A DNA stretch of 64,000 nt from Pavona decussata (lineage: Eukaryota). Positions 4,101 to 27,400 of the stretch are shown here, one piece after another. The stretch spans positions 682,001-746,000 of the forward strand of contig CDRNST010000180.1 in the NCBI GenBank assembly GCA_977016875.1, read 5' to 3'. The notes under the pieces were generated by a model, which was given only the letters and a program-made list of their open reading frames with translations, was not told the DNA's origin and did no database searches. The first letter of the stretch is position 1. The number at the start of each line of letters is the position of its first letter. The translations under genes and the position numbers were made by a program.

Positions 4101-7100
4101 GGTGACCACCTACCCTCGTGCTGCCACACTTGCGCGCCCCTTCAAAAAAAGAACACCTGATCACAGGTGACATAGGAGACTAACACAACCACTACGCTAG
4201 CAGGTTAAAATAGTTAACTGTAACAGTCCACTGAAGGGCTTATTATCACATGGATTGTAACGTTTTGAGAGTTCATGGGAGCTTATACTCAGGGGGCTTA
4301 TATGTGTATTTTGGGAATTTTCCAGTATCTCAGGATACAAGGAAATAATTTAATAAAGAGATTTAGCATCGCGATTACGGCAAACGGCAAACACCAGGCT
4401 GAAATTTTCTCTTTGATGAAAAACCATGAAACCTTTTTGGTTTAAGCTTATCTTCGCCCAGTCAGCGACAGCTATCGAGCAAACACGAAAAAGAGAGAAG
4501 TGAGTATGAGAAACACAAGTTTATGCATTTTAGAACAAACAGTGGCTTGACATTTCCCGTTTGGCGTAAGCCGTAAACGCGAAGCTAAATCTCTCTAATA
4601 ATTTAATCAGTGGGCAAGGAAGTGAGGTATATGTGTAGATTCAAAATTGGTTCCTTCACAGATGAAGGAAGGAGATACGAGAGTGATGCCTGCACAGAGA
4701 TCAGGGTTAGCTAACCGAGCTTCTAAACTGTGCAATTTTATTGATTTTGTTTCATTTCTGTGTTTAACAGGGGGCCATTTTGTGCTTTTTGGCTGGCTGG
4801 GATGAAATCACAGTTGTCCATGATGTACTGTCGTCCAAAATAAATGATGTACATGTAAGGAATAACTTTATCCTTTGGGTCACAAAAATTGCAAGTTAGT
4901 GTAGTCTTCGTTAACTCGTGAGATTAACTAAAAATTATGACTTGAAAATTATAAAAACAGCATATAACATGTTTTGAACTCAAAAGCTATAAACATTGGT
5001 TATTTTTACAGCAGGAAGTTTTCATAACATTGACATTTTACTTTAAAATATGACAAAAGTTGCTCACAAAAATTGTCAAATTCTTGAAATTTCCAGATGT
5101 CAATTCTAGTCTGAGCACTTAAAAGAAAAAAGTCAACAAATTCTCCTGAAAAAGTCATTATTTCAAGTCATCAAGAACTAATGTACATGTGGGTACAGTA
5201 CGTATGTTCAAAATGGTGAAAGAAAGATGTCCTTAGTTCAGTGAAATGGAACATGGTTGAAGTAAGTCAATGAATAACTATTGTTTTGCAGAAACCTCAA
5301 TTCCTCGTTTTACCACTTCATTCCATGCTACCAATGTTTAACCAGCGCCAAGTGTTTGAAAGGTTAGTTTCTAATGCGCCAGTATTCACAAGCAAAACAT
5401 TTAAGGTCAATTGTTTCAGAAAAAGATTCTACAAACTTTGAGAATAGTGAAAAGAATTCTATTTTTCTCTCCGGTAGACTGTTCCACATGGTTCATTTAT
5501 TTCACACTATTTACACAACATTAACATAGAAAGAAAAGTATTACAACAGATGATTACAAAATAAAAATAAATACAGTATAAATTATAAAATGTGTGTGGT
5601 GGTCAAAGTAGCAAAGGCTTTCTAGTTGATCACCACCTACTTTAAAGTAAACAAAGAAATGACACTGAGCTTTATTGAGATACAACTTCCCTCCTGAGTA
5701 TATAAATTAATGTAGTTCTTGATTTTGGCAGTTTTTAATTTGTTGTGTTTGTGCCCAGTGTTATGATGAGATTGGGGAGGTTTAGTTTGCCAGGAGGTGT
5801 GATTTGAGGTCTGAGGAAACCTACAGCCTGTTCTTCCTGTAACACCCTCCTCGGTAAAAGAAAATTCATTTCTTCATTTATCATCGATTAGCTCTTCGCT
5901 ATTTGCAAGTCAGCCTAGTTTTAACTTAAAGTTCTGCTGTGAATAAATAAAACTTGAAAACTTGAAAGCATGGTAAATTATAAGCAATGTGTTTGGTGTC
6001 TAGGCCCCCTGTTGGAGTCCGTAAGATTGTGCTGGCCACCAACATAGCAGAGACGTCAATAACCATTGATGATGTGGTGTACGTGATAAATGCCGGCAAC
6101 GAGAAGGAGCAAATGTATGATGCAGCCAACAAGGTAGAGTAGAAAATCCGCTTGTTTTTGTTTGTTTGTTATTTTGGACGGTTATCTGTCCAGAGGAGAG
6201 TAAATAATGAACAGTGTCCAAATCCAATCCCAGCAGTATGCAGGATGTTTCTCCCATGAACCTAGTTTAATGGCCTTAGCTCCCACGAGTCTCCTGTAGC
6301 TCAGTGGCAGAGCATACGAACTAGTAATCGGTCAGGCTTGATTCCTGATAGGAGCACTCGACTTAATCAGTGCACTCCACTGTAATCTCTTCTCGTATTC
6401 ACTTTACAACAGGCGTGTGAAAGGTAGTCTCTGATCGAAGTAAAGAAATCCTCATTTTTATACTACTACATTGTGCATTCTGATTGGTCGTTGCTAAGCA
6501 CTTAATCATAAAAAGGTCGTTCAATGATACGTCAATTATAATGTCAATAAACGTTTCTTACGAAAACAAAACAGTCTCACAGCTAGACTAAATGGCGTAG
6601 TCTCCAACAACTTCAAGTTTCAGGTCTTCGTGTTCAAATATATGGTAGAACAACTTTTTAGAACAGTTTTAAAACAGTGAAAATGATGTATTATTCAGTG
6701 AGTGACATACATGTAGGCAAACTCGGAAAAAAGAAATCCGAGTGCTCCTATCAGGAGTGGAACTCAAGACCCTCTGATTAGTAGTTTAGTACTACAGGAA
6801 AGCACTTCATAACAGTAATAGCTTTCATTTAAATGGTCATACTTGGTTCTCGTCCTTGTTCCGAGAGTTTTTTCTCCGGGTACTGCGGTTTTTCCCTCTC
6901 CTCAAAAACCGACATTTCCAAATTCCAAGTCGATCTGGATTGTTGGCAAGCACTTAATCACGAGTCTCTGGCACGGGAGATTGCACAAGCACTTGCGTGT
7001 TATTGNNNNNNNNNNNNNNNNNNNNNNNNNNNNNNNNNNNNNNNNNNNNNNNNNNNNNNNNNNNNNNNNNNNNNNNNNNNNNNNNNNNNNNNNNNNNNNN

Positions 7101-10100
7101 NNNNNNNNNNNNNNNNNNNNNNNNNNNNNNNNNNNNNNNNNNNNNNNNNNNNNNNNNNNNNNNNATAACCACCTTGTTCAATGTCTGCCTCGTCCCCATA
7201 CGCCCCCGCTTCGTGCCCGTTCCCATGCTCCGCCAGTTCGTATTCGCGCTCATTCCCAAATTCCCTTATAAAGAAGGTAGGAGACTGTGGAGGAGGCAGG
7301 TTGAGTGTTGCAAACAGTACTTCAGGACTCCTAATAACCACTCTTCTTCCTTTTCGCTATTCTTCTGCCCGCAAATTGCTGCTACTTGCACAGGTTAACC
7401 AAGCTACTGTTTTTGTTAGGTGTCCTGTTTAATGACGCACTGGACATCCCAGGCTAGTGTAGTCCAAAGACGAGGCAGGGCAGGGCGATGCAAGCCGGGC
7501 TTATGCTTCAACCTTTTTACAAAGGAACAGTTTGAAAACATGGGTAGGTTTCTTCAGTAGCAACAGTCTACTTCAAGTTTGTGTTTCTGTGGTTTAGTTA
7601 ATTATTTAATTTTTTTGAAAATTCTTCTGCAGCGCGGTACCAGACAGCCGAGATGCAGAGGATTTCACTGGAGGAAATAGTACTGCAAACAAAGGTAAGG
7701 AGAAGCAGCCACACCATGAACAGGTTTTCTGTGGATTATCACACTTGGTGTTTTCATCCGTAGACTCAACAGTTAGAACCACTAGAGCTCGAACAAATCT
7801 ATCAAATTATGTTGTTTTGCTTGAGACAGACAAAAATCGAAAAATCTCTTTAATTTGAATGGCGAAAGTTTAGGATTTTATCCACAGTCTCAAAATGTAC
7901 AGCCTAGTTACGTAGATCGATGTTTGAGGAAAGAAAAGGAAGGATTCACAGTTACATAATATCAATCCTTTTCTGTTTGTCTTAAAATGCAGATCCAGTG
8001 TTCAGATCATTCGTGTAAGGTGCAGAAGTTTTTGTCGCAGGCTCTAGACCCTCCATCGCCAGTCGCTGGTAAGAAGAGTTGTCAGAAAGTCCTTGTCTTT
8101 TAGACTTCTTTTGTCAGTGAACCTCCCTTGCTAATTAAAAAGAATTACTACTTAACAGGAGCGAAGAAGCGCACGTGAATCCTTCAAATGTGAACCTTTG
8201 TAGTCTATGTCCTTTCGTTTCTCTATTTCTGAGCCTTTTTGTAAGAAATGTCCTGGAACGTTGGCAGTTAATGAAATGGACTGTAAGCTGCTGTCTCCAC
8301 TCAGCCTTATCCTTGAGTCATTCGGTGAAGAAGGGCTTACTATAGTGAAGTCTTTGGATTGTTTTTTTTTAAACATATTTTTGTGCCAAGCTAAGGCGAA
8401 ATCTATTAATTCTGTTAATTCTAGAATTTTTGGCAGAGTTTTGTTTCACGTGCATCCTTGAAGAAAATCTGAAGAATACGTAGATTCGAACTGATCCCCG
8501 ACCTTCATAAGTAAATAATTATATAAATTTGCGGTCATCCTTCAGGAGCATTGAGAAGTGGTTTATTCATTAGTGAGTATCGTGAATAACTCGAGTTTGT
8601 TTGGTTTGCAGTGCAAAGTGCGATATCAGAACTGCAGGAGATCGGAGCTATGGATAATCAGGTGAGTAACACACCTAATTTCTTAGTTATATCTTGGGTT
8701 GCAGTGGCGTCAAACACACTTCAAGTTATAGATAAGAATCCAATCTTTTGTTGTTGTTGTTGTTGTTGTTGTTGTACAGCTTTATTGGGTACAACTATAA
8801 ATGAAAAAGAAAAAAAGGTATGAACCCCAGTAGGGGTGGTGCGAACGGGACACGAGCGCCCATGCAAGACACCGCCCTGCACTGCGTTCGACTTTTTAGG
8901 CCGTTCGTCTCTCATTGTAAAGTGTACTTGCTGTGCTTCTCGTTGTTTGTATGGCTCAGACACACTGTGACAGCAATTTTTGGCAAAAACTGCTTGAAGT
9001 ACACTGTACGCGGCTAAGCTCCCAGCTCACTTTGCTTTATTGAAACAAATAAATTGCCTCTAAGCAGCGCACTAAGCCTCTTGTAAATGAAATTAAGTGT
9101 TGATCAGTTTTGCGTATTAAACTGTTGAAAAGGTAGAAGGTAATAAAATTCTTCATAATTTTGAACAACTGACACTGTCGGGGTTGTACTCTGTTTTTGA
9201 GGCACAAAGTGACGTCAGTGAAGAGTGGTTCAGCGAATTTTTAAAGGAAAGGAGTCATTGAAGAATTTTAAGGGGTCAACATTTGTAGGTTTTTCAAAAG
9301 TCTTCTCAGGTTTGCCATTTAATTTGCTGGGTCAGGAAGCCAGCTTTGTCGGGGTTTTGATCTAAGACCTCTCTCTTATCTACCGGAACACTGCTACGTG
9401 GAGAAGTAACATTATATTACCAGCCCTACTCCCCCCGGTGAGAGAAATGTTACTTCAACGAAGATCCCCCTACCCCCAGCATTAGCATTTTGTTAGGTTT
9501 TACTAGTGGTTTATTGGTAGGCATTTATACACCCCGGTGGAAAGAGACAATGTGGAGCAGAGTTGTCCAAGGCAGCAGTGTATGAGGCCAAGCCTAGAGC
9601 CAGTAGGCCATTTCCGAGTTGCTGTGAATCTCATTATGAAAGCGAGGCTTAGTGCAAAGCTTTCGATATGAAAATTAGTTTTGTTTGCATATGAATGAAG
9701 ACTAAAATTTATAATAAAAACTTTGCACTTAGCCTCGCTTTTACAGTGAGGTTCAAAGCAACCCGAAAATGGCCTATTGACTTTAATACAAAGGTGTCAC
9801 GCTGGTAACCCCAAGGCTACTACATTTCCTTATAAAAACTAGAAGCTAAAGAAGACGGAGATCGATGTTTTCTTTTTGCACTGATTCCAGGAGGATCTCA
9901 CATCCCTCGGAAGGCACATGGCGTATCTACCAGTGGAACCACGGATAGCAAAAATGATCATTTACGGCACAATCTTCAGGTGCTTGGATCCAGTGCTGAC
10001 AATCGCTGCAAGCTTAAGTTATAAAGATCCATTTGTGACACCACTCAACTGCCGCGAACAGGCTGATCAGGTAAAGAACCACCGCATACAACATGTGTTT

Positions 10101-13100
10101 AGTTTTTACCTTTTTGTGTAAAGAGGAAAAGGTTGAAAAAACTAATTGGAAGACGTAGATTGAGGAGCGTAAATTCGGTTTTGTGTCTTTTCAAAGCCTC
10201 CCTTTCTGAATTTTTTTTAATGGGAATTGTCACTCTCAAAATCCAGGAACAGCCATGAAAATACGTGACAAGTGCAATTCTGAAAAATGAATTCCATGAA
10301 AAAGCATTTACCTCATTAGATGAAAACTTGGCGACACTTAACTTTACTGAATTTAGCGATTAATGGCTAAAATAAAATGAGCTAAAATTACACTGCATTA
10401 ATAGTTACAGTTACAGTTCCGGCTTTGTTTCGTTCAAAATTAAGTTGTAGAACGTTGCATGGTGTTGTTTTTATCGCATTTTAAAAAGTGATTTGAATGG
10501 AGCTAAATGGTTGACGTTTATGATCCTTTCCCACAAAAAGTCCATTATCGTCATAAAACTCTTGAATAAATTGGCTTGTCTCAGTTCGTGAATTCGCGAA
10601 AATTAAGTGACATATCTTCTAAAATTTATGCAAGATCTTAAAAGTGTTGCTAACTACAGATTTTTTTTAAAGATCGCTAAATTAACGTGTGGCCAAAGTT
10701 TCGTGTAATAATGTATTTGGATTATCTTTCATTAGCAAACTCCGTTTATCCTCAATAGAGAATTCTTTCACACGCTAGCTAGGAACGTCCCAAATTTTTG
10801 TGTGTATCCTCGTCAGTCCTTTTTCCGGTAATTTAGAGCAAGTCCCATATTTGGGGTAAATCCCTTATTTGATTGTTTATCCTTTTCTGTTGTAGTCTCG
10901 CAAAGGTTTTGCGCATGGCAGTAGGAGTGATCACGTGGCATTATTAAACGCTTACAATGGATGGACTGAGGCCATGAGCCAGTCACGGGGGAAAGAGTTT
11001 GTTGATCAGCGGTTTCTTCATTGGGGCACGCTCAACATGATACGCGGTAAGTGGTGTTTTATTTTCTTTATTTTTTATTTATTGTCACACCAAGGACATA
11101 CACTTTACTGATGCAAACATAAAGTAAAAAAAGAAAGGAACACAAGATGGTAACTACTGACAGTGACGAGGACAACCTCGTTTGCAGGGTCTCCCCGGGA
11201 ACGAGGTTGTGTATTGTGACGTGGAGGCCTGAATGAAACTATCAAGCTTCTATGTAAATTAAAAGCCCGTTTAAACGGTTTCAACGTTCGCCCAACATTC
11301 GTTCAACAAAGTTGAACGGACGTTGGGCAAATGTTGGATGAACGAAGTGACCAGACTGTTTCAACGCCATTCAACATTTTCAAGACCAAAGGAAATGTTG
11401 AATCGATATTGAATGAAAGTTTAAACCATTTAAAATTTGATTCAACACACTTTCAAAATTTTTTCCCCTTTCAACAATGTTGAACGACCTGTTCAAACGC
11501 CCCCGACATTTCGTTCAACAACTGTGTTAAACACATGTTTTAGCCTCGTTAATTTATTTAATCAGCAGATTTAATGTAGATTTGGTGCTAAGTAAAGGCT
11601 GGTTTCCATATGATCGCAGACCTTATTGCGATCTGCGATCCGTGATCATATGGAAACCAGCTGCAGAAACAATTTAATGGTCAGACATCAAGCGGTCCCT
11701 TACATGCTGTGAAAACAATAATGTTCATTTACATTTCTTGACCAACGCAAAATAACTTTCCAAAACCACAAAAATATTTCTTCTTCATAGGCACTTTAAT
11801 TAAATATTAAATAATAACAAAAAATAAATAGAAAAAAATCGATTAAAAAAAAATTAGAGAAATTTTGTTCAAATTATTTTTAATATGACAAGCATTTTGT
11901 TGTGCTTAGGATTTTTTTGTTGGCTACCTTCAACTCTGGCGAACAGAAAAACAAAAGTATTTTACAATAGTTATTATTTCTTAGAAGTTACTGTTATTTT
12001 ACGGTGAGAAATAGTTCAATAACCTCGAAGGTAAAGTCAACATGTCTTCATCTCTTTTCGTTGCAGCCCCGTTGATACTTGTAGCTCACGTAGGATTTCG
12101 ATTAGAATGTAGTTGTATTTGAAGGTTCTTGCAATCCGTTGAACGAAGAAAGCAGAAAAAGAATCATTCTGTTCTAAGAGTTTTACTGAGGCTTTTCATT
12201 GTGGATTTTTTCTTAATTCTGATGATGACTTTGGCTCAGTCAGTGTCATCGATTTTTCCCACTAGTTAAAGGACCCTAGTCAGCCTCCGCCATTTTCGAT
12301 GCCATCGAAATTATTGATATTGCATGGTGAAACGAAATCTTATTGCTCTACTGTAAGTTGTGTTCCTGAAAGTATGTTTCATTATCTTTAGTAATTTCAG
12401 AGTGATTTCGTTCATTTCGACATGCTCCGAATAAAATATAATAGCCAAACTCTCGCATATAAACAAAAACAAAGGTGTGGCTGACGAGGGCCCTTTAATC
12501 GACTGAGACTCATGCGTTCCAAATATTATGAAAGTTTTCTGTGCTATCCCTCTGCAGTAGCGGTTGTCTCTCTGCCTGGTTGTCTTTACTCTTAAACCTT
12601 GGTCTCAGGTGCGCATTGCACGTCTAAGTTTGACGAAGGTTTAAACACGTTCGTGTTCATGGGATTGTTGTTGATCTTCTGTTTCGGAATGGTTTGTGAC
12701 ACCGGAATCATGTCTCCGTTCATGTCGATAGTGTACTTCCTCCCAAGCACCTTGAACACGGCAATTCTGATCTCCTTCAAACGGAAGCAGTAAACGAACG
12801 GATTCACGGACGAGCTCAGGTAGACGACAGTAGCGGAAAAGTTGTACAGGATGTTTAGTCGTGGGCCACCGCCCCGCTTCATTCTGACCACCAGTATGGA
12901 GATGAAGGGGATGAAAGAGGCAAGGAACAGAATGATAATGTACAGCATGGTTACTGCAGATCGCTTGAAGCTGTTTATGTCAGGAGCCAGACGAAGCTGA
13001 TCTTTGGTCTTTTTCTGCAGAACACGGACCTGAAAATAGAAAAACGATCAGTTATTACAGCAGGTTTCTAATCCAAGTCCAACTCCCTGAAATGTCTGAA

Positions 13101-15892
13101 AAAACGTTACGTAGCGAGGTATTATCATGCGAAAGGAAGTCACTTATGCGTGACTTTAGTAGCTTTTTGTAGCCGCTGAAGAAGGTTAGTTTTGTCTAAC
13201 CGAAATATTGGGCAATAAAATTAGCCTCTTTAGCTGTCGGATCATGCCTTGCATTTGGTTTTACTTTTTTTTTTTTATAGATGACATAAGTACTCATCAA
13301 CATTCTATTGTGATTGCTATAAATTCACATGACATCATCGTCTATTATTGTAATCCTCGCGTCGTTCTCAGTTAGGTAATAAATGACCAAACTCAATTCT
13401 TACTGGCCGTTTCATAGAGGTCGCCGCTTGATAGAAGTGGCCGTCGTATAGAAGTTTTGTTTACAGTAATGTTCTGATTTTTAGGATGTTCAGTATAAGG
13501 TGGCCTCTCGGAGAAGCTTTGACTTTACTTTGCCATGGTTTTGTTTACAAGCTGGTTCTAAGTTTTGAGTCTGTGGATGAAATTCTAAGCTGTGACCATT
13601 CAGATGAAAGCTACTGAGCAGTACTATCCTGTGGTGCTGTTTATTATGCTGTACAAGGTGGTTCTATGTTTTGAGTCTGTGGATGAAATCCTAAAGTGTG
13701 ACCATTCAGATGAAAGCTACTGAGCAGTACTTTCCTGTGGTGCTGTTTATTATGCTGTACAAGGTGGTTCTATGTTTTGAGTCTGTGGATGAAATCCTAA
13801 AGTGTGATCATTCAGATGAAAGCTACTGAGCAGTACTTTCCTGTGGTGCTGTTTATTATGCTGTACAAGGTGGTTCTATGTTTTGAGTCTGTGGATGAAA
13901 TCCTAAAGTGTGACCATTCAGATGAAAGCTACTGAGCAGTACTTTCCTGTGGTGCTGTTTATTATGCTGTACAAGGTGGTTCTATGTTTTGAGTCTGTGG
14001 ATGAAATCCTAAAGTGTGACCATTCAAATGAAAGCTACTGAGCAGTACTTTCCTGTGGTTCTGTTTATTATGCTGTACAAGGTGGTTCTATGTTTTGAGT
14101 CTGTGGATGAAATCCTAAAGTGTGACCATTCAGATGAAAGCTACTGAGCAGTACTTTCCTGTGATGCTGTTTATTATGCTGTACAAGGTGGTTCTATGTT
14201 TTGAGTCTGTGGACGAAATCCTAGAGTGTGGCCATTCATATGAACTTTCCTGTGATGGTATTTATTATGCCGTACAAGGTGGTTCTAAGTTTTGAGTCTA
14301 TGGATGGAATCATTGAAAAGGAAGTCACTGAGCGGTACTTTTCTTACCGGTACTGACGCTGTTGTCAAAAAATGGTTTTGTGTAATGGTGACACTGAGAA
14401 GGCTTATTGAAGTTTATTTATTGGAAAAACAAACAAACAAACTCACCTGCAGATAAATGGCGAAATATGCAGCAATTGTGATCGCTATACATGTCATGTC
14501 CATAACAGCAATTGTGATAACCAGAGCGTTGTAAGGGGCTCCAAAAAACCGAGCGATAACCAAGCCTGTACAGATAATCCAGAAAGTCAACACTGCAAAC
14601 AAGACACGGCGGACTGTCACGAGGCTCTCATATCGCAAGTGCAGTTTGATAGCGAGAAATCTCTCGACTGATATAGCTGATATGACGAGAAATGAAACCC
14701 CGGCACAAATCCACGAAAGTGATCCAGTGGTGAGGATTTTCGCGACACAGAAAGCTTCAGTATTTCGCTGAAGTTCGAAGATGATTTGTAAAGCGTTCGT
14801 CGGTTGAACGATCAGCCCAACCAAGAAATCGGCTAATGCGAGACAACAGAGCAGTGTGTTGGACGGTGTGCGAAGTGCTGGTGTCCTCCAAACAGCGATC
14901 AGGATTAAAAAGTTACCGACAGAAGCTGAAATAGCTGTTAGCAAGTTCATCACTACCAAAATTATGTTAGTCACGTATGTCGCCTTTGAATCGTACCACT
15001 CTTCATTCAAAATAGTGAAGCAGGTTATGTTAGTTACGGAAGGTACAGCGGACGAGACGGCAGCCATTGTTGAGTTCTCCATGTGAAGTTACTTCTTCCT
15101 GTAGTGTGTGTCGCCTTTTTGTAGCAATGTTGCCGCGATGATAAACGTTTTTTTAAAATTAAACCAACACGGAAAATCTTATCACACCTCCTTGTTCCTG
15201 TGTAAGTGATATGTCTGGCGTGGTAAAGCGATGATCAAGCAAGCGTCGACGCTGTTTAGATTCTCTACATCTTGCTTCAGTTGACTGAAGGGCTTTTTGA
15301 CATGTTATGCTAATATGTATTTGGCGTGCGGGCCGCGCCGCCGGTAACTCTCTAGGGATATCTTTTAACAATCATTTATAATTAAATGTTATTCACGCTG
15401 ATCCTTATGCTCTGATAACCAGCATGACATTTAATCTTCTGTGACCTTTGTTCTAAAATACCCACAGCGAAATATTTACGTCATAGTTTTGTTTTCTTGC
15501 TTTCTTTTCTTTTTTTTTTTTTTCTTTCGATTTTGGCCGTTGACCAACTCAATCAAGCAAAACTACTGCGCGAGTTTGATTTTGATAAATATGTTGACAA
15601 AATAGATCCGCTTGCGAAGGAAATCGTTTTGTGAAAACAATATAATTTACAAAAAGCGCTCAACTTCATGTCAATTCAACGGAAAGGCGATGCAAATGTT
15701 TTGAATATATGTGTCTCAGCTGTCACTCGTTTTCTTGAGTTAATGGTTAATGGTCTAAAGTGCACTAATGTACTTTTATAAGGTAATCATGCGACTTCCA
15801 CTTAGTCCATTTACCACTTAGTAATAACCTGTTTTTCTTCATCTGCAATTCCCGACACTGTTAATACTTGTCAAAATAATAATTCATAATTT

Positions 15893-15940
<48 letters not shown>

Positions 15941-15990
15941 GCTCACGCACTCATCAGACAGATTAAATACTGTCTGATGAGTGCGTGAGC

Positions 15991-16036
<46 letters not shown>

Positions 16037-19000
16037 GTATTCAAAGCTCTACGCTTAAAAAGTGTATTGAGCACTGTTTAACGGCTTTAGCCACTTTATT
16101 GCACGTAATTCATAATTTAAAAAAGGTTCAAAGCTTTCCTACTTCAGCGTAAAGAACAGATTTGATCTCGATACTCGAACAGTAAACAGGACGTCGTTGT
16201 CTCGTGTTTTGTTTTTTCAAGTTTTGATGTGACGTCATATCCGTAACGTCAAACAACAGTCTAGTGAATGAGGATTATTCCAGATGATCATGACATAAAT
16301 CCAGATGAGCATGGCGTCATTTATTTTTCAGGAGTTTCCTTCGGCGAATTGTGCAAGAAATACACGTAATTTGTGCGATTTGCAGATACATCAATGTTTC
16401 AGTAGGGATCTACAATAGGTTTTGCGGCGGTACCCAGTAAATTGACTCAGGAGGCTGGAGTGGCGTGTTAATATAATTCCAAATTTCGTCAACAAAAATC
16501 TTGACATTAATTAGATTCGAAGAAATTTTTAAAAGCATTCTCTTCATGCCGTAAATTAACGGCTAAAATTGGATTTGTATGACATGCAAAGCAAGTTTGC
16601 GGTGAAAATAGTTCTTCATCTACAAAGGAAATCGACCACAAAATTAGCACTTGAGTTGAAAACTTTTATGAAAGTGGCCCAATTGAAAAGCCGTAAAACA
16701 CGGAAACCACGACGTTTCTTTCGCACCATGAAGTTGAAAAATATTCGAGGGATTTTTTCTTTTTTGTGATTTGTGAATAATCGAGAATATTTCAAGCCGC
16801 ATTGTTATCGGGTGTTTACAAAAACAAACCCTCTGGTTTCTCATGAGATGCGAGAAAACCACTGCACCTGCGCTTGCATTATCTCACAGCGGTTGTGGAT
16901 AGACTGGCGGAAAATACTGAGCAGTTTTCGCCATAAAAATTTGGAATATGTCGCTTGGTGGGCGCGCGAAGACCGAAATTGATCATCCCTAAAATAAAAC
17001 TTTTAAAAGGAACGTTCAACCGGAACATTCAACTTCTTGTTTACGTCCTTGACGCACGAGCGCTGAAACGCGGTCGGAAGTTGCCTTTTTGTTAATTTGT
17101 AACCTGTACAATGGTCACGTAGCACACCCACTACTCACTCAAACCTTTTGCTTTCATGGTGGCAGATGAGAGGTCAGTAGATTACGGGAAGTCGTTAGTA
17201 GTCTTCAAAAATATATTGGTGCGCCACTCGAGCGACAAGTGACGAAGTTCCCGCGACTTCGTCCCCTTTTTGACCCTGTCAAACGTAAACAACAGGAGAA
17301 GTCAAATAAAGATAAGATTTTTTTTCACTTGAGAGCTCATAGCTGATACGTTTTTCAGAGTCAACGAGTTCACGAAATCATTTTGCGATTCACAAAAGAG
17401 TTTCAAGTCTTTTTTTAGGTGAAGTTAGACTTTCTCAAAGTCCGTTTTCACGACTTCCTCGCTTGTCGGTCACTCTTTCGGCGCATAAGAAGTCGACTTG
17501 AGGCAAGTTTACAGTGAAGCGTGTGGAGACTGGTCTCTGTCTTCTATTTGAATGCTTGACATCCGGAAAACCGATTCACCTAATGGTTCCTGAAACACTT
17601 TAGTAAATCATAAAACACTTAAGTAAACTCAAACTCACAAAAAAAAAAAAAAAATTATCAGCGTTTGACCTCTCAAAGTGTAAACCTTATCTTTAACGAA
17701 TTTTTCTCATTTCTGGCGTTTGACCGCGGTTAACACGTCCAAGTCATTTGACGGGAAGAAGAGAGACCCTGCAAACAACGTTGCCGGTATTCTTGACCGC
17801 CACTTGAATCACCGGAAGGTCTCGCGATTCTCGACTGTCGCATCTTGTGCCACTGTTTTCTTTAAAGAGAAATAGAATGCTCAAAGTCTATTGAACATTG
17901 AATAGCTAACCTACGAAAGTACTGCTGTTGGAGTCTTTGGAGTAATGAAATTTTGAAAAGGGACTTGTTTGGATAGAAACTATTAAATACTTTGAAAGAT
18001 TAAGAGTATCTCTTATTTAACCCATTGTTTTTCTTTAAGTACTTCAACTTACTTTATCCAGTGGAATCTTTGGAGCAGTGTTTGTCCGGGGTGTGTCTTT
18101 GTAGTAAAACTTTGATTAGTGACGTCACCTTCCTGTCGGCCTTAACTCTCGGACACATTTGAATCAGACTTCCTGTCGGTATTCAAGTTAGTTTTCAACA
18201 GAAAAAACATAGAAACGACAAACTGCTATAACCGGCTATGACCAAAATTCCTTTGTCTGTCTTGTGACGTTTTAGTGGAAAGATTGCCTCCTACGCAAAC
18301 ACACTTTGACTGGCTCGTCACGTCACGAAAGATTGCCTCCTACGCAAACACACTTTGACTGGCTCGTCACGTCACGAAAGATTGCCTCCTACGCAAACAC
18401 ACTTTGACTGGCTCGTCACGTGACGAGCCTGTCAAACTGCGTCTGCGTAGAAGTTAAGTGGAAAGCTGATCTATTGAAAGTTTCAGACTTACCTAAAAAT
18501 CTGGACCAGCTTCCCACACTGAGAGGAAGTGATAACTTTCAGATATTTCCTGGGATGTAGTAATTTAATAGACCATTTCCGAGTTGCTTTGAACCTCATT
18601 ATGAAAGCGAGGCTAAGTGCAAAGTTTTTGTTATGAAAATTAGTTTTCATTCATATGCGAACAAAACTCATTTTCATATGAAAAGTTTTGCACTTAGCCT
18701 CGCTTTCATAGTGAGGTTCACAAGCAACTCGGAAATGGCCTATTTACTTTTTGACTTCTTTCCTTCTAAGCGTAAATTTTTTTAATTTTTAACTGGTTCC
18801 CTGGTAGAAGGGACTAATGCGTAATCATTTTCCTCAGGTATGCGCGAACAATTTATCCGACTTCTGGAGGGCTCGGGCCTAGTCCGTAGTTTTGAAAGCG
18901 GTCACGCGGTCAATGCCTTCGGTGGAAATCAGGAACTTGTCAAGGTAAGGAGGCTCTGATCATAACATATCTCCATGATCCAAAAGTGCTAAGTGGTTAC

Positions 19001-21882
19001 ATGAGAAAACCTTCCTCAAAAAACGGTGACCACACCCACACTGCCTTCGCTTAGTTCGACATTACTCCTGTTCCGCTACAGGAGGCAACTAGAAGTATTT
19101 GAAGACTCCACTCCCCCTCCCTGATAACATTCTAGTCCACTGGAGGTAGGCACTGCATGAGCAAAGTGATTTGTCTAAGAATCGGCGGCACATTTTCACA
19201 CTTCAATGAATAGCGGCTCTATGAGATTGCAAGGGCTTGAATTGACATCTTAACAAGATTTTTGTGTTTATCTGCTCACAGGCCATTGTATGTGCTGGTC
19301 TTTTCCCAAATGCTGTGAAAGTTGGTCTTGGTATAGAGTCTAAAGGGAGGTGTGGAAAAAAGCGAGTCAGGGTTGCCTTCCGAACCAGGTAAGTGTAGGC
19401 TTTTTAAGCATACTAGAGTGTTAGTTAGGATGATAGTTTCATCGGCATTAATATAAGCGCAAAGAAAACAAGCTTGCTGGTTTTTCTTGTTTTTATACAT
19501 TTGTTTCTTCTGAGGACAACATAAGAAGAATCAGTGTGTTAGTTTTCCGTATGTTTGTGATTATTATGCTTACATGTCGGTAGTAAAACCAGTCTTATGT
19601 CACTATTTCTGTAAGTTGAGTTGGCGAAAACGTCTATGAATGAATCCATGATCAGTGATATTCAGAGATAAAAGTTCCATTACGTATGCGCAGGTGGTAT
19701 TCATGCAGGCCGTCTTAATCAAATTCAATCCAGTGCCATAATAATCCACTGAGCACAGTCCGAAAGTTATATCAGCAAGCCTTATGCCCTAATCACACAA
19801 AAGTTACAGCATGTTTAAATGTTTTTCAGTTTAACGCGGTTTAAACTCGTTTTCTTTATAGAAGTTGTTCACTGATGTGTTTCGACTTCATTTCAAGCAC
19901 TACGATAGTACCAGCTAGAGCTTACTTGAACTCGGTTTTTCAATTTTTGTTCACTGGTCTTCATTTGGTTCACCTGGTTTAACTAATCATGTCTGCATTT
20001 GATTAGTTCAAGCGGCAAAACCGTGTACTACATAGCAATGACTTTCCTTGTAAGATGCTGATAGTCGAGCGAGCGAGGAGAACACGTAGCGCGCGTTTGA
20101 GTCGATTGCCTGTCGGAAACAGGACGCTTTTCCGCGTGACGGTCAATTTTTCCACATTTAGTTTATTTTGTTCTCTTTTTACCGCAGAACTGATGGCCGC
20201 GTTTTCTTACATCCCTCATCGGTCAACTCTGACGAGAGACAGTTTGCCAGCCAGTGGCTTGTGTATCACGACAAGGTAATGAGTATAGTTGAGTACTGTG
20301 CGGGTGACTAAGTCAGACTGGTAAAGGCCAGTAGTTTTATCAGCCAGTAATTAAAGAAACATGTAAAGACATGTTATCGTATTTATTTACCATCAGCTGA
20401 ATTGCGTGAAAGGCTTGAAAACAGTCTTTTCTTTTCTAAAACAAGAACAAGTGATTATGAAATAATCCCAACTTGACCATACTGACCCCTATGTAATTGG
20501 GAAGGAGTGGTAATGATGATGATGATGATGATAATGACAGCGATGACGATTGTGATAANNNNNNNNNNNNNNNNNNNNNNNNNNNNNNNNNNNNNNNNNN
20601 NNNNNNNNNNNNNNNNNNNNNNNNNNNNNNNNNNNNNNNNNNNNNNNNNNNNNNNNNNNNNNNNNNNNNNNNNNNNNNNNNNNNNNNNNNNNNNNNNNNN
20701 NNNNNNNNNNNNNNNNNNNNNNNNNGCTGATGTGGTCGTGTCTAAGTAAAAACTGCAAATACGAATTACAGATGATGTTGACGGTGATCATCGGATGATG
20801 ATAATGATGATGATGATGATGACGATGATGATGGTGGTGGTGGTGGTGGTGGTGATTACGAAGGTGACAGTGTTGATGAGTACTCAAGTTATTGGTGGCA
20901 CGAGCTAGGAGGATTCTTCGGTGGACCATTCTGTTCTATTTTCATAAACACGTTTGTCCAGGACTTATCATCATTTCCTTTTCCAACTCATTTTCCCTCC
21001 ACAGGTGAAGTCCACCCAGGTGTTCATCCGGGACAGTAGTATGGTTCACCCAGTTGCTTTGATTTGTTTGTCTGGAAAAGAAGTCAGAGAAATACGACAT
21101 GAGATACGGCATGGTATGTATTTCACTTACAAACTATCGGTTCCTTTTACTTGGTGAATAATTTACACAGGAAACGCAACGCTAAATAAAAAATTTAGCG
21201 AGCGACAGACATAAATGAAGATAAGAGCGATGCTAAAACTGGGGCCAGGTGGCGGGTTGGTAACGAACTTATTCCGAATATTCGACTACAAACAGTTCTT
21301 CTTTCCAGAATAGTCACGTGCGAAAGCAATTTTTGCACGTGTTCTGTCTCGTGTTCTTCACGTGATCGAAAAGAGGGCTCTTGGTAGTCTATGAACTGAC
21401 TCGTCTCAAGTCTTGTTTCTTGTTCTTGATCAACTCTCGTGCGACGCCCTCTTGTTAGGTGCATCTCATGATCCCCTCTTACTGCCTTTTTATGAAGGGG
21501 AGATGGCGGTGAAAGCTTTCATCTCCTACCTACTTAATATGATTGGATAATTGAAAGAAAAAATAGAGAGCTTGTTCTTCCTAGAAATCCTGCTCGGCTC
21601 AGTACCGCCTTCCGTTTTCCAGGTCCCTCTCAGTCCCCGCAACAGCCCCGAGCCGTAACCCTGGCTGTGGATGGTGACCGCTGGATGGCGTTCCATTGCT
21701 CACCAAGGCTTGCTCGAGTACTGCAGGCGATTAGAGAAGAGGTTAACAAGATGGTGTCAAGCAGCATTTCGCCGTCGTCCACAAATAACACATTATTTCA
21801 TCATAACACTCAGTTGATCGAGGCCCTGAGTCTCTTGCTAACGTTACCGATCCAGGAATCTCTTCCATGCACCGCTTACTAA
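268..21882 (+). CDS. DHX30: DEAH-box ATP-dependent RNA helicase, DHX30-like (5' end lies upstream of the window)
   Basis: Manually spliced GT-AG exons with consistent phase: 268-351, 884-983, 1442-1601, 2147-2294, 3727-3810, 4771-4854, 5292-5362, 6004-6133, 7420-7543, 7633-7694, 7993-8068, 8612-8661, 9891-10070, 10896-11046, 18838-18944, 19282-19388, 20188-20275, 21005-21113, 21623-21882 (stop). Motifs: PRR (Ia), CTTGILLR (Ib), DEVHER (II), MSAT (III), ILCFLAGW (IV), [11 protein letters not shown] (V), QRRGRAGR (VI), followed by HA2 and OB-fold regions. Segments [30 protein letters not shown] and [11 protein letters not shown] match my recollection of DHX30 better than DHX36 or DHX57. Confidence 0.88.
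1069..1190. repeat. (CAT)n microsatellite
   Basis: Direct observation; intronic. Confidence 0.95.
3958..4181. mobile_element. Small palindromic MITE with an adjacent or nested second hairpin element
   Basis: tagcctcctacgcagacgct...agcgtcagcataggagg (3958-4053), then acctgcaatcaggcg...cacctgatcacaggt (4056-4168). Confidence 0.55.
4354..4597. mobile_element. MITE with ~40-bp imperfect TIRs
   Basis: Left end agagatttagcatcgcgattacggcaaacggcaaac versus right end gtttggcgtaagccgtaaacgcgaagctaaatctct. Related decayed pieces at ~1731-1955 and ~50530-50750. Confidence 0.75.
6256..6364 (+). mobile_element. tRNA-derived SINE-like fragment; inverted second copy at ~6685-6800
   Basis: A-box-like tagctcagtgg (6297-6307) and decayed B-box ggcttgattcc. 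The 17-mer cctgataggagcactcg recurs on the - strand near 6740-6756. Confidence 0.55.
6845..7005 (+). mobile_element. SINE body fragment, truncated by an assembly gap
   Basis: ttctccgggtactgcggtttttccctctcctcaaaaacc resembles a widespread metazoan SINE central motif (recalled similarity). Confidence 0.45.
7006..7164. other. Assembly gap (N-run)
   Basis: Run of n. Confidence 1.
8748..8774. repeat. (TTG)n microsatellite
   Basis: Direct observation. Confidence 0.9.
9604..9777. mobile_element. Palindromic MITE (family A, copy 1)
   Basis: Termini taggccatttccgagttgc ... gcaacccgaaaatggccta; self-complementary along most of its length. Confidence 0.8.
11260..11540. mobile_element. MITE (family B, copy 1)
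   Basis: Starts aaagcccgtttaaacggtttcaac and is rich in ttcaac/gttgaa. Reverse-orientation homologue of 22571-22876. Confidence 0.7.
12592..15082 (-). CDS. Rhodopsin-family (class A) GPCR, orphan, ~357 aa, nested antisense in a DHX30 intron
   Basis: Exon 1 15082-14447 (donor CAG|gtgagt) and exon 2 13029-12592 (acceptor tttcag|GTC), joined in phase 0. Seven hydrophobic segments with GN (TM1), LALAD (TM2), SVERF (TM3), FIP (TM6) and NPFVY (TM7). N-terminal N-glycosylation sequons NST and NIT. Confidence 0.92.
13171..13214 (+). ncRNA. Degenerate hammerhead-like motif (Penelope-type)
   Basis: agccg-CTGAAGA-A-ggttag(ttttgt)ctaacc-GAAA-tatt-gggca. 6-bp stem II and a palindromic ATAT mini stem III; stem I has a mismatch next to the core. 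Confidence 0.45.
13554..14310. repeat. 106-bp tandem satellite, ~7 copies
   Basis: Unit ggttctatgttttgagtctgtggatgaaatcctaaagtgtgaccattcagatgaaagctactgagcagtactttcctgtggtgctgtttattatgctgtacaaggt starts at 13554, 13660, 13766, 13872, 13978, 14084 and 14190. Confidence 0.97.
15895..16105 (+). mobile_element. Truncated Penelope-like retroelement insertion with 5' inversion and 15-bp target-site duplication
   Basis: Direct repeat taattcataatttaa at 15880-15894 and 16106-16120. Perfect 67-bp inverted repeat (15895-15961 / 15970-16036) containing a hammerhead core, followed by a ~70-bp unique tail. Confidence 0.75.
15970..16009 (+). ncRNA. Minimal type I hammerhead ribozyme (mirror copy on - strand at 15922-15961)
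   Basis: ctgt-CTGATGA-gtgc(gtga)gcac-GAAA-ctc-g-gag-TA-acag. Stem I is ctgt/acag, the core CUGAUGA and GAAA are intact, stem II is 4 bp with a GUGA tetraloop, stem III is short and quasi-palindromic, and the GUA cleavage triplet is at 16003-16005. Confidence 0.8.
18278..18453. repeat. 49-bp unit x3 ending in a hairpin (collapsed palindromic MITE)
   Basis: gaaagattgcctcctacgcaaacacactttgactggctcgtcacgtcac at 18278, 18327 and 18376. The following tgacgagcctgtcaaactgcgtctgcgtag is an imperfect reverse complement of the unit. Confidence 0.9.
18567..18744. mobile_element. Palindromic MITE (family A, copy 2)
   Basis: aatagaccatttccgagttgc ... gcaactcggaaatggcctatt; homologous to 9604-9777. Confidence 0.82.
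20510..20880. repeat. (GAT)n/(GGT)n microsatellite spanning an assembly gap
   Basis: Direct observation; N-run at 20559-20725. Confidence 0.9.
20559..20725. other. Assembly gap (N-run)
   Basis: Run of n. Confidence 1.
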
Positions 21883-24031: not shown

Positions 24032-24452
24032 CTAGTACAACATGAATGCACGCGCATCTTACAACGCGCGGTTGCTGTGATGTAATGAATAGTAAACTTG
24101 GATTTTACGAAACTTCTCGATGGCTTAACTTTGCGATTACCTCACGGCCGCCCTTGCCGTTGAATGGCGATTGATCCTTCTAAAGAGTTGAGACGGAAAA
24201 GGTTGCAAGCAACACTAAAATTACAAGTTTGGTTTCACTAATCGAACCTTTAAGAAGTTAAACAATCGATCGATCTTCGGTGGCAAATTAATTGACCTAA
24301 GCTGGATTGCCGTATTGTCGACATTATTTTCTATTGTGATCTGTTATGTCTGAAATATCATTAACAAGGAGTTCAAGGAAAGCCGTAAAGATCTTCAACT
24401 GAGAACGGAATTAACCAACAAAGCTGTTTTAACAGAAAACAGCGCATACAAG

Positions 24453-27400
24453 ATGGCGACCGCGAAATCATCATTCGCCGGTCAAATCGAGGAGGTCAAC
24501 CGATCATCAAAGACAGTTACTTTTTACGTCAACGGTGATCGAAATTTCCGCGGGCACGTAATGGTTATTACTGCCAGAAGATTTCGGAACGTGGAAATTC
24601 TTTTGAACGAGTTGGGTCGGCTGACGTACTTCAAGGATTTACCCCTGGGAGTTCGTTACTTATTTTCCCTTGAGAGCGGCGCCAGAGTTGACAACCTTGA
24701 ACAGTTAATTGACGGCAAAGCATACGTTTGCTCATCCCACTCACGTCTCAAGAAGATCTCATACGGAGGGAAGCCACCCTTGGCTCACTGGGGCTCCAGA
24801 CAGCAGTTCGAACTGCCTGATATACAACGGATGGCGAATAACGAAACAAAACGACGAATGCTCGGTGTTAAAACGACAGAGCATTCGAGGCCACGAGGAT
24901 ATTCTGACCCGAAATCAAACCAGAGTGATCGTAAGGTAAATTTGAAGCCTAAAATTGTCACTGTAATCAGAAATGGACCTCACAAACCTCGTACGGTTGT
25001 GAAAACTCTTCTAAACAAAAGAACTGCGCAGAAACTCGAGCAGGTTCTCGATGAAGTCGCAAGTTCCTTTGGCAACACCGGTGGACTGAGCCCGCCGAGA
25101 AAACTATACACAGTGACAGGACAGCATGTCCGCGACGTGGCTGAACTATTTCGTGACGAAAATAACATATTTATTGCCGTGGGAAGTGAGAAGTTCAGTC
25201 CTGACGAAGTCGCAGATATTTTGGAAGATCTGGAGGAGAGTACGAACTCGAAAAAGCATTCTAAACGAAAGCAATCGAAAATGGGTTACGAAGGAATGTC
25301 ACACAACAAACAAAGGAATGCTAAGGGTAAAGATGTCGAGCAGATGAAACCTATTAACACTGCTGAGGAAAGCAAACTACCAAAGCTGCCTGACATTCAT
25401 GCTATAGTTGAGAATAAACCAAAACAGGAAAACAGTAACAAACCGCGTGTGCAAGCTAATTTGAACGCTAAGAGATCGCAAGTCAGTCACGGGAAAGTAA
25501 AAGAAGTTGACGCTCGTAGCCCGGAAAGAAAACATCACAATGCAGTGAAACTACCTAAAATTGGTAACAATAACTTAGTTTCGAAACCGATGAAAGAAAA
25601 TAAAGAAAATGAAGAAATTTCTAAACCTAGCAACGAGGTAAATAATAGTGCCTTTGGGACTCAGAATGCTCAAGGAGAACTCAATGAATCGGAGAATGTA
25701 AACAATAATTACACCGGCACGGGAAAACCAAACAGAAAAGAGTCTGTGAGTAAGAAACACAGCGTTAGCAACAGTAAAACACGAAAGAAAACGTCAAGAG
25801 ATGACAGTGGAATTATAACAGAGGAAGAGGTTAAATATGGAACTGTCACAGACAGGAGCGTCGAAGATGTTTATCACATAGGCAAGAAAATTGGCGACGG
25901 AAACTTCGCTGATGTGCGTGAATGCGTTGATAAAATAACCAAGAAAGAATTTGCTTTGAAAATCGTGGACAAAAGCAAAATTCGGGGCAAAGAGCAGATG
26001 ATAAAAGACGAGATGGAGATTATGCGAAGGTGTAAACATGCGAATATTGTACGTATGTACGAAGATTTTGACACCCCACGACACATTTATCTCGTCATGG
26101 AGTTAATCAAGGGAGGCGATCTCTTCGATGCTATTTCGTCGTCGGTGAAATTCACAGAAGATGTCACGCGGAATTATGTGAAGGACATTTGTAAATCCCT
26201 GGCGTACTTACACACAAGAAAAATTGTTCACAGAGATCTAAAGCCGGAAAATCTGCTGGTGAGTAGAGCTTTGCCGTTAGATAGTACTCTATGTCAGAAG
26301 GTCACACTTAATCAGTCCATATAAGTTGGCTCTTAGAGAAATAAGTCCGTATATGAAATTAATTTTTAATGATGAGTTCTCAGTAGTAATAGTTGAAAGA
26401 TCCTTTTCAATTACCAGCTATTGAAAATGGGACATTAATCCAAAAAGAAGAAAAATGATCCAAAGTTCATTTGACAAAGGAAACGAAGGCTTGGGATAAA
26501 ACATTTTGTGAGTAAATGTTGTCTTTGTTTAGCAAACACAAAAAAACCACAATGCATTAAAGCTTGCTTACTATTCAAACAATTACACCCAGATTTTTAT
26601 TAAAAACGGCTCCATTGTTTACTTAATTTGGCTTCTAACATTATTTTGATGTAACCATGGAAACTTAACAGATTTAATGACAGCTGGCGTTTTCTGAAAG
26701 ACCTTTTCCACACAAAGCCAACTTAGTTCTTTCTGTGAAATTTCGTGGATGAAACAAATTGCATCGGCCAGTGCTTTCCTGCGGTGCTAAATTTTAAGTC
26801 TGAGGATGAAATCCTAAAGTGTGACCATTCAAACGAAAGCTACTGAGCAGTACTTTCCTGTGTGCTGCATGTTTAGTATACTGCATAAGGTGGTTCTAAG
26901 TTTTGAGTCTGTGGATAAAATCCGAAAGTGTGACCAATCAAATATAAGCTAAATTTTGCAAAGTCCTTCAGTGCTGTGGTGTTCAAATGGAAGTTATAGA
27001 GCAATGGTTTTCAACCGTCAAGCTCTTCTAAAATGTCTCAGATCTGTGCTTTGTAACTTTTACTGAGTGCTTCTCATTAAATACAGCATATAAAACCTTT
27101 GCTAGATGCATACCCATCTTTCCTCTCTACTCACCTCTGACAATACAAAATATCAATATTATGCGGCTTAACTTTGTAGCTTCAATATGCACTATCATCA
27201 AATCTCTTTCCTTTTTATTAAATGCCTCTTTCTGTAGCTTTAATGCTTTAATGTTTTTAATTAAATCCCTTTTTCATTAAATACATTTGCTTTGAGTTTT
27301 AATGCACCTTTAATCTGATCAACATTTTATTAAATACGTTTCTCTTTACAAATTCCTCTTCCACTAAATGCATCTTTACTTTGCTCTTTTTGAGTGTTAT

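Follow-up and report, generated by a model that had tools for sequence, protein, structure and literature searches.

A hairpin insertion of a Penelope-like element places a hammerhead ribozyme motif on both strands of an intron in Pavona decussata

Results

A short insert lies in an intron of a DExH helicase gene

We analysed a 64,000-nucleotide stretch of DNA from Pavona decussata (assembly GCA_977016875.1, contig CDRNST010000180.1, positions 682,001 to 746,000, forward strand). The whole stretch is referred to as the window and positions are counted from its first letter. Our subject is an insert of 211 bp, at 15895-16105, that derives from a Penelope-like element (PLE) and carries a hammerhead ribozyme (HHR) motif on both strands. 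Upstream of the insert, on the + strand, an exon at 9885-10118 encodes the HA2 domain of a helicase (Pfam HA2_C, E 4.4e-14). Downstream, also on the + strand, an exon at 20186-20284 (G000:C180:702186-702284) encodes an OB_NTP_bind domain (PF07717 profile, 33.3 bits, above the cut-off). Since the insert is between the HA2 and OB_NTP_bind exons, it is intronic in a DExH helicase gene. An earlier note on this DNA, made from the letters alone, had named the gene DHX30. The intron stands but the name is unverified; the closest solved chains to the HA2 exon are those of DHX36 (E 8e-21). Nested here, on the - strand, is an open reading frame (ORF) for a rhodopsin-type receptor. The frame (14414-15082, ATG at 15082) encodes transmembrane segments 1-5 (Pfam 7tm_1, E 3.8e-17), and a piece for segments 6-7 is found at 12595-13047 on the same strand (7tm_1, E 1.1e-4), about 1.3 kb from the first frame. 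The insert is 813 bp upstream of the receptor ATG, as the earlier note had estimated (about 800 bp).

The anatomy of the insert, as first described from the letters, was recovered in full by our own reading of the window and by a repeat finder. The insert is flanked by exact 15-bp direct repeats, taattcataatttaa, at 15880-15894 and 16106-16120. Its opening 142 bp are a perfect 67-bp inverted repeat, in which 15895-15961 pairs with 15970-16036 across a spacer of 8 nt, with zero differences between the arms over the 67 paired positions. The repeat finder gives slightly longer arms of 70 nt (15892-15961 and 15970-16039, 99% complementarity, 8 nt apart), because pairing with the direct arm continues into the final three bases of the left repeat. 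Through microhomology, base 15 of the repeat, like its last three nucleotides, might just as well belong to the end of the inverted arm. We consider the repeats to be the left and right target-site duplications (TSDs) of the insertion, 14-15 bp long, AT-rich and beginning with TA.

Between the TSDs, two parts can be told apart. The first, at 15895-15961, is an inverted 5' arm on the - strand; it is the reverse complement of element positions ~9-78, numbered from window position 15962. The second, at 15962-16105 on the + strand, is a direct, 5'-truncated copy, recognised by matches to other copies as the final 144 bp of a PLE 3' untranslated region (UTR). The first 8 nt of the direct copy (15962-15969) form the hairpin loop. 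Its last 66 bp (16040-16105) are a 'tail', which is present on the direct arm only and would lie between two reverse transcription starts; this placement follows from the inverted arms of most sampled copies, which end 63-67 bp before the 3' end.

Three single-base variants of the window copy lie in, or adjoining, the tail. There is a G at each of 16037, 16053 and 16100, where nearly all other copies have T, A and A, respectively. The variant at 16053 is common to the window copy and one other (L011), which suggests variation of the source lineage, not change after insertion.

Both arms carry a complete type I hammerhead

In the window, exactly two sites match the HHR core pattern CTGATGAG..CGAAAC, namely 15974-15997 (+) and 15934-15957 (-); 0.00 sites were expected from shuffles. 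A stricter descriptor, aware of the helices, finds the same two sites and no others. Hence, the complete minimal type I hammerhead previously claimed for both arms is present. On the + strand, the motif extends from 15970 to 16009 (positions follow canonical hammerhead numbering). Helix I, of 4 bp, pairs 15970-15973 with 16006-16009 (cugu/acag). This is followed by CUGAUGA (15974-15980), a 4-bp helix II closed by GUGA (15981-15992, gugc-GUGA-gcac), GAAA (15993-15996), and helix III (15996-16004, A-cuc-g-gag-U). Cleavage is predicted after A16005, at the end of a GUA triplet. On the - strand, the mirror-image motif starts at 15961 and ends at 15922, and its cleavage is predicted between 15926 and 15925. 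Direct reading shows the type I core (C3 U4 G5 A6 N7 G8 A9 / G12 A13 A14 / A15.1-U16.1 H17) on both strands, and confirms the type I layout of three helices with open ends at helix I. The earlier note gave PLE hammerheads a short palindromic helix III. Here, it is short, but not perfectly palindromic, having a central G; two copies could pair over 8 bp around a central G-G mismatch.

Three other PLE families in the genome, with about 50% protein identity, carry type I HHRs that share the core. All three of their helices differ in sequence while pairing is kept, and helix III is palindromic (CUAUAUAG, CAGGCCUG, CAGGCUUG). Across the four families, then, the core is constant and the helices are varied yet paired. 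We conclude that this comparison supports a real hammerhead. With 45 kb of PLE loci, the helix-aware descriptor gave 7 matches, compared to 0.01 in shuffles.

The monomeric ribozyme fold is not favoured. In a nearest-neighbour model, the HHR fold has a free energy of -4.7 kcal/mol, compared to a minimum free energy of -9.8 kcal/mol. This agrees with the view that such motifs work as dimers or with protein assistance (PMC11167929, PMC4209133). For the complete hairpin of the window copy, the minimum free energy is -127.3 kcal/mol (z -24.6), corresponding to the perfect 67-bp duplex. A transcript through the insert should, in this model, fold as a 67-bp duplex that masks both ribozymes, as the earlier note had soundly reasoned.

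The insert is the 3' end of a longer element with many copies

The earlier note called for a search for related copies, and for a link to an ORF encoding reverse transcriptase (RT) and a GIY-YIG nuclease. Both were found. A search of the 602-Mb assembly returned at least 61 matches at 90-100% identity; at least 40 other direct copies share 90-98% identity with the direct part of the insert (15962-16105). Of the first 30 loci, about 10 extend upstream into shared element sequence and the longest reach the RT/GIY-YIG ORF, with which they are physically continuous. Hence, what the window contains is the 3' terminus of a longer element. We followed the longer copies for 7 kb. Their ORF encodes, in order, an RT motif (YRDDGL), a cysteine-rich linker, and a C-terminal domain with the VIY..YIG signature. 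The stop codon is ~125 nt before the HHR and the element ends 271 nt past the stop; the HHR sits 100 nt before the 3' end of the element.

A word search detected 2438 relatives of the ORF, the full-length ones having ~670-700 amino acids. Few are from named hosts (one stony coral and one sea cucumber). Pfam searches with the family's ORF pieces, four full-length homologues and all members of an alignment of the family (A1), to E 10, gave no RT or GIY-YIG match. Comparisons of the ORF to PDB sequences, by phmmer and profile searches, were also blank. Because these searches were blank, folds were tested instead. An AF2 model of a full-length homologue (75% identity; pLDDT 79.7) best matched, in the PDB, the telomerase TERT of Tribolium (3du5, E 1.6e-8). 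The next RT-fold matches were to other telomerases, and to retron, DRT and group II RTs. The last 150 residues of the homologue were modelled with a pLDDT of 88, and have a beta-beta-alpha-alpha-beta-alpha topology. Foldseek, applied to the isolated nuclease domain, returned no match at E <= 0.001, and only structural re-alignment gave a clear answer. In the latter, the domain aligned to the GIY-YIG catalytic domain of I-TevI over 90 of 92 residues (Z 9.3, root-mean-square deviation 2.3 A), and named GIY-YIG nucleases (I-TevI, T4 EndoII, UvrC, Hpy188I) accounted for 12 of the top 13 entries. Besides VIY..YIG, the domain keeps R, H, E and N residues. Note that an RT with a C-terminal GIY-YIG nuclease is the definition of endonuclease-bearing PLEs. 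The Penelope-like identity proposed earlier is thus upheld by the telomerase-like RT and GIY-YIG folds modelled for close homologues, together with the HHR near the 3' end.

Motifs in the ORF also point to a clade. In alignment A1, MRWKAFFF, ADKT, CNCRxKxxC, CDLC and CRH are nearly invariant among 19 full-length homologues, and the same motifs occur in ORF pieces of the window family wherever these are covered. By eye, the canonical internal CCHH motif is absent from the ORF. The 'Hydra' clade of PLEs is recognised by RWK, by DKT rather than DKG, by a CxCX5C linker, and by CxxC/CxH around the catalytic E and N (PMC8557442). Going by these diagnostic motifs, the parent element of the insert appears to be a 'Hydra' clade PLE.

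In related PLE families of the genome, units of 2396 and 2571 bp are repeated in tandem, and every spacer examined contains an HHR. The HHRs are ~100 nt past the stop codon and ~150 nt before the next ATG. In such tandem units the ribozyme probably processes multimeric element RNA, by analogy with known systems, as a dimer or with protein help. Among the sampled loci, the exact family has no tandem (pseudo-LTR, long terminal repeat) copies, all being truncated or inverted. Some PLEs of other families have open frames of 715-716 amino acids. These include L046 and its neighbours (G000:C361:121981-127651), where there are at least three head-to-tail units with a spacing of 2396 bp, and L044 (G000:C212). 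Separately, a 1095-nt contig of a longer family copy, from the ORF end to the hammerhead, was present in a sequencing run of presumed RNA, which is no more than a hint that the family is transcribed.

Hairpins with a one-sided tail are the norm in the family

To describe the arms, we scored 40 sampled copies, with outer ends scored for 24 and inner ends for 26. An inverted 5' arm is present in at least 26 of the 40; hence, the hairpin is the family norm. That truncated copies often have inverted 5' ends, as the earlier note stated, is therefore true of this family and is a published PLE trait. The outer end of the inverted arm is at element position 75-83, or 63-67 bp inside the 3' end, in 20 of the 24 scored copies. 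The direct arm reaches the very 3' end of the element. In every copy examined, short or 1.6 kb in length, the ~66-bp tail is on exactly one arm, the direct one. The inverted partner in the 1.6-kb copy also ends 66 bp short.

The inner junction is variable. Spacers measure 0-21 nt and arms between 26 and several hundred nt, with a triple structure in one case. Since the inner junction differs from copy to copy, the hairpin must be made anew with each insertion and not inherited. The paired arms have inner ends within 13 nt of each other in 19 of 26 copies. This agreement fits either two cDNAs that ran to the same RNA 5' end, or fold-back or template switching as first-strand synthesis finished. 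At least nine other sampled loci have an HHR with an intact core on both strands (at least 10 of the 40, if the window locus is counted). The two putative start sites are 100 and 34 nt past the HHR cleavage site. Because both are downstream of the HHR, every arm longer than ~70 nt will carry the ribozyme, which is then found on both strands.

The TSDs of the other copies are 13-15 bp, mostly 14 bp, AT-rich, and usually start with TA. They are different at every locus. Hence, the insertions are independent. Microsatellites of the (TAT)n, (TAA)n or (GAA)n type are the insertion sites of several copies (L008, L016, L019, L049, L051 and L053). Such AT-rich and microsatellite targeting is as published for PLE nucleases, the microsatellite bias being reported for PLEs with a cysteine linker before the nuclease.

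The 5' ends of the direct copies have features of their own. Eight longer copies (L005, L006, L010, L013, L015, L020, L024 and L026) contain a TATA-like TATATATATAA box 20-30 nt upstream of element position 1 (window 15962). The box ends ~20 nt before element positions 1-6, where 14 of ~40 direct copies start. This raises the possibility that the 144-bp class are not random truncations, but represent in full a short RNA produced from a terminal-repeat promoter. One other copy with a TSD (L047, G000:C6:6300138-6300231) starts no more than 1 nt from the predicted cleavage site (element position 44/45), and two more (L048 and L049) begin, ambiguously, at element position 47. We considered ribozyme-cut RNA as a template for such copies. 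With one clean and two ambiguous cleavage-site starts among ~40, there are too few to sustain the idea.

Two samples have an allele without the insert

Four sequencing runs were compared with the locus. Two of these, X1 and X2, are samples from one study that have the same species label as the window. Contigs from both match the left flank to exactly 15894, the boundary of TSD and insert, and resume at 16165; the 211-bp insert is absent. The haplotype concerned is ~1-5% diverged in the flanks. An empty site, for which the earlier note suggested searching, is the simplest reading of these alleles. Thus, the insert looks polymorphic and young. The earlier argument for recent activity had drawn on the identity of the arms. 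This bounds age only loosely; the insert-less allele is the stronger argument. RNA from the locus was not found in the four runs, and no record containing the locus is listed as RNA.

Discussion

The insert as a product of PLE integration

We conclude that the insert is an ordinary, polymorphic, 5'-truncated insertion of the hairpin type, made by a PLE with the motifs of the Hydra clade, and that the way the element integrates yields the double hammerhead as a by-product. Much of this has precedent. The literature already describes hammerheads in PLE terminal repeats, inverted 5' arms and one-sided tails. An inverted 5' copy, with a tail at one end only, is a PLE hallmark (PMC8557442), and dual HHRs on opposite strands have been noted in PLEs (PMC4209133). 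Furthermore, a PLE RT can cut and extend both target strands in vitro, starting at two internal sites that bound the genomic tail (PMC11167929).

We are confident that the insert is one retrotransposition product, and propose the following mechanism. The GIY-YIG nuclease would nick AT-rich DNA, with a stagger of ~14 bp. The telomerase-like RT would then copy the element RNA from two internal starts. A start at the 3' end of the element (window 16105) would produce the direct copy. A start ~66 nt further in (window ~16039), primed on the other target strand or reached via fold-back or template switching, would produce the inverted, tail-less arm. Both cDNAs would stop, or be joined, near a common 5' point (window 15962-15969). 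The anatomy, the family membership, the recurrent architecture and the insert-less allele were all observed. What we infer is the mode of priming, activity of the ribozyme and its masking.

The parent element resembles described Hydra-clade PLEs (PMC8557442) in many respects. It has a single short ORF, a C-terminal GIY-YIG domain, and the RWK, DKT, CxCX5C and CxxC/CxH motifs. Canonical HHRs, insertion in AT-rich or microsatellite DNA, and cnidarian and echinoderm hosts are also shared. Hydra-clade elements are shorter than 3 kb (PMC8557442) and the related families here are likewise units under 3 kb. However, insertion here is not strictly into (TA)n, the sites being 14-mers rich in AT as well as (TAT)n, (TAA)n or (GAA)n repeats. 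The tail is also longer, at ~66 bp, than the 30-40 bp usually quoted.

A second parallel is PAc, a Poseidon element of Anolis carolinensis (PMC11167929). In PAc, as proposed here, two internal RT starts downstream of the HHR bound the tail, and both target strands are cut, at AT-rich sites, and extended. In addition, the HHR of each element is near the junction of the pseudo-LTR and ORF, and that of PAc needs help to cleave. The clade and host are different, and the HHR of PAc overlaps the start codon, instead of being ~125 nt past the stop.

Compared to other metazoan PLE hammerheads (PMC4209133), the motif is similar in being of type I, in having 4 bp in each of helices I and II, and in its location in a PLE terminal repeat. 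With 3-4 bp, and the near-palindromic sequence CUCGGAG, helix III is nearer to the 'canonical metazoan' form than to the min-HHR, which has no helix III (PMC4209133). The published motifs are mostly single, in truncated copies, and are sometimes opposite-strand pairs 100-700 bp apart. The pair here is only 8 nt apart and, unlike those, is perfectly complementary. Twin-priming of LINE-1 also places an inverted 5' segment beside a direct 3' segment inside one TSD-flanked insertion. However, in LINE-1 the inverted segment originates further upstream, and the two segments are not duplicates. Here, both arms derive from one region, with a fixed internal start for the inverted arm.

Several results weigh against our interpretation. 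First, nothing in the window, the hammerhead included, reached an Rfam gathering score. The best clan member, Hammerhead_3, scored 20.4 and 19.3 bits (E 0.2-0.4) against a gathering score of 48.5. Hence, the Rfam check proposed in the earlier note did not call the hammerhead. Note that Cervera and de la Pena found short PLE hammerheads with their own relaxed descriptor, not with Rfam models (PMC4209133). Second, the insert-less contigs hold 57 unaligned letters where 44 were expected. For this reason, a clean empty site is inferred, not read. Third, no contig in the four runs bridges the unique flank into the insert, so that the filled allele rests on the assembly. Fourth, there was no intact full-length copy of the exact family among the scored candidates; the examined copies are all truncated or interrupted by stops. 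With Pfam and PDB sequence searches blank, the RT and GIY-YIG identity comes from motifs and the predicted folds of homologues, and not from the family's own broken copies. Finally, PAc showed no strand bias in start use in vitro, whereas the tail here is always on exactly one arm. Consequently, a simple picture of twin-priming is incomplete.

Alternative explanations

The most serious alternative is that the host has co-opted the insert. Here, read-through of the helicase intron (+), or of the region upstream of the receptor (-), would yield 67-bp double-stranded RNA that is diced or edited, or else the ribozyme would cut host transcripts. Any diced small RNAs would be directed against the PLE family. 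The insert is indeed intronic, and upstream of a promoter region, and either strand is predicted to form a perfect duplex of 67 bp. Generic microRNA precursor models also score 30-52 bits, all below their gathering scores. We considered a microRNA precursor as such, and rejected it; these permissive Rfam matches are of a kind that any long perfect hairpin gives. Logically, a fixed functional element should not be missing from other individuals, yet their contigs lack the insert. The same double-HHR hairpin is carried by at least nine other loci, and no RNA record holding the locus was found. We conclude that there is no evidence for a host function of the insert and regard co-option as highly unlikely.

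Slightly less probable still is a non-autonomous element of the retrozyme type, multiplying as a small circular RNA that is cut and ligated by the HHR. Animal retrozymes derive from PLE pseudo-LTRs (bioRxiv 10.64898/2026.07.22.740005). Moreover, most copies are short and include the HHR, and the start of L047 almost coincides with the predicted cleavage site. However, the tandem head-to-tail repeats of a unit are absent, both from the window locus and from the sampled loci. Copies begin at scattered points, or in a cluster 8-14 nt upstream of the HHR, and not at the cleavage site. Every copy ends at the PLE 3' end, with a TSD.

We also asked if the palindrome could be an artefact of assembly, due to a chimeric or fold-back read error in the contig. 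PLE inverted structures do trouble assemblies (PMC8557442), and independent contigs that would link the unique flank to the insert are missing, as noted above. Conversely, an exact TSD of 14-15 bp bounds the insert, and 15894, the TSD edge, is precisely where the insert-less allele departs. The arm architecture and the outer boundary recur, on separate contigs and with different TSDs, at 25 or more further loci. In our opinion, an error of this sort is very improbable.

A foldback or MITE-type (miniature inverted-repeat) DNA transposon, with terminal inverted repeats and a chance hammerhead-like string, would account for a short, near-perfect inverted repeat, an AT-rich TSD and many copies, but has next to no chance of being correct, given that the inverted repeat is not terminal, with a 66-bp tail on one side only, that many copies have no inverted arm and the inner junction varies, that copies with the RT/GIY-YIG ORF have a 3' UTR collinear with the direct arm, and that a 13-15 bp TSD with 5' truncation is a signature of retrotransposition.

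Implications

Alone, the insert is of little importance. What it offers is modest. The two-start-site model of PLE reverse transcription came from in vitro work on a lizard element, and the insert provides clean genomic evidence for it in a cnidarian, from the deep-branching Hydra clade. It also belongs to a family whose activity is so recent that polymorphism persists. Genome annotators should expect PLE hairpins to surface as false microRNA precursors. A further idea is that hairpin PLE insertions, in transcribed introns, could be a built-in source of long, perfect double-stranded RNA, both complementary arms arising in one integration event, and feed small-RNA guides against the element's own HHR and 3' UTR. 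We think of this as a long shot. If true, PLE integration chemistry would seed the element's own silencing.

Other features of the window

An open frame at 21538-21879 (+) was considered as the C-terminal exon of the helicase, and set aside because it had no Pfam or PDB match. N runs are present at about 6990-7170 and 20560-20730, with 326 Ns in all. Downstream of the helicase is a gene for a doublecortin-domain protein kinase (DCX plus Pkinase), at 24354-26321 (+) and 28078-28626 (+). Lastly, an open frame of 1664 amino acids occupies 45110-50101 on the - strand.

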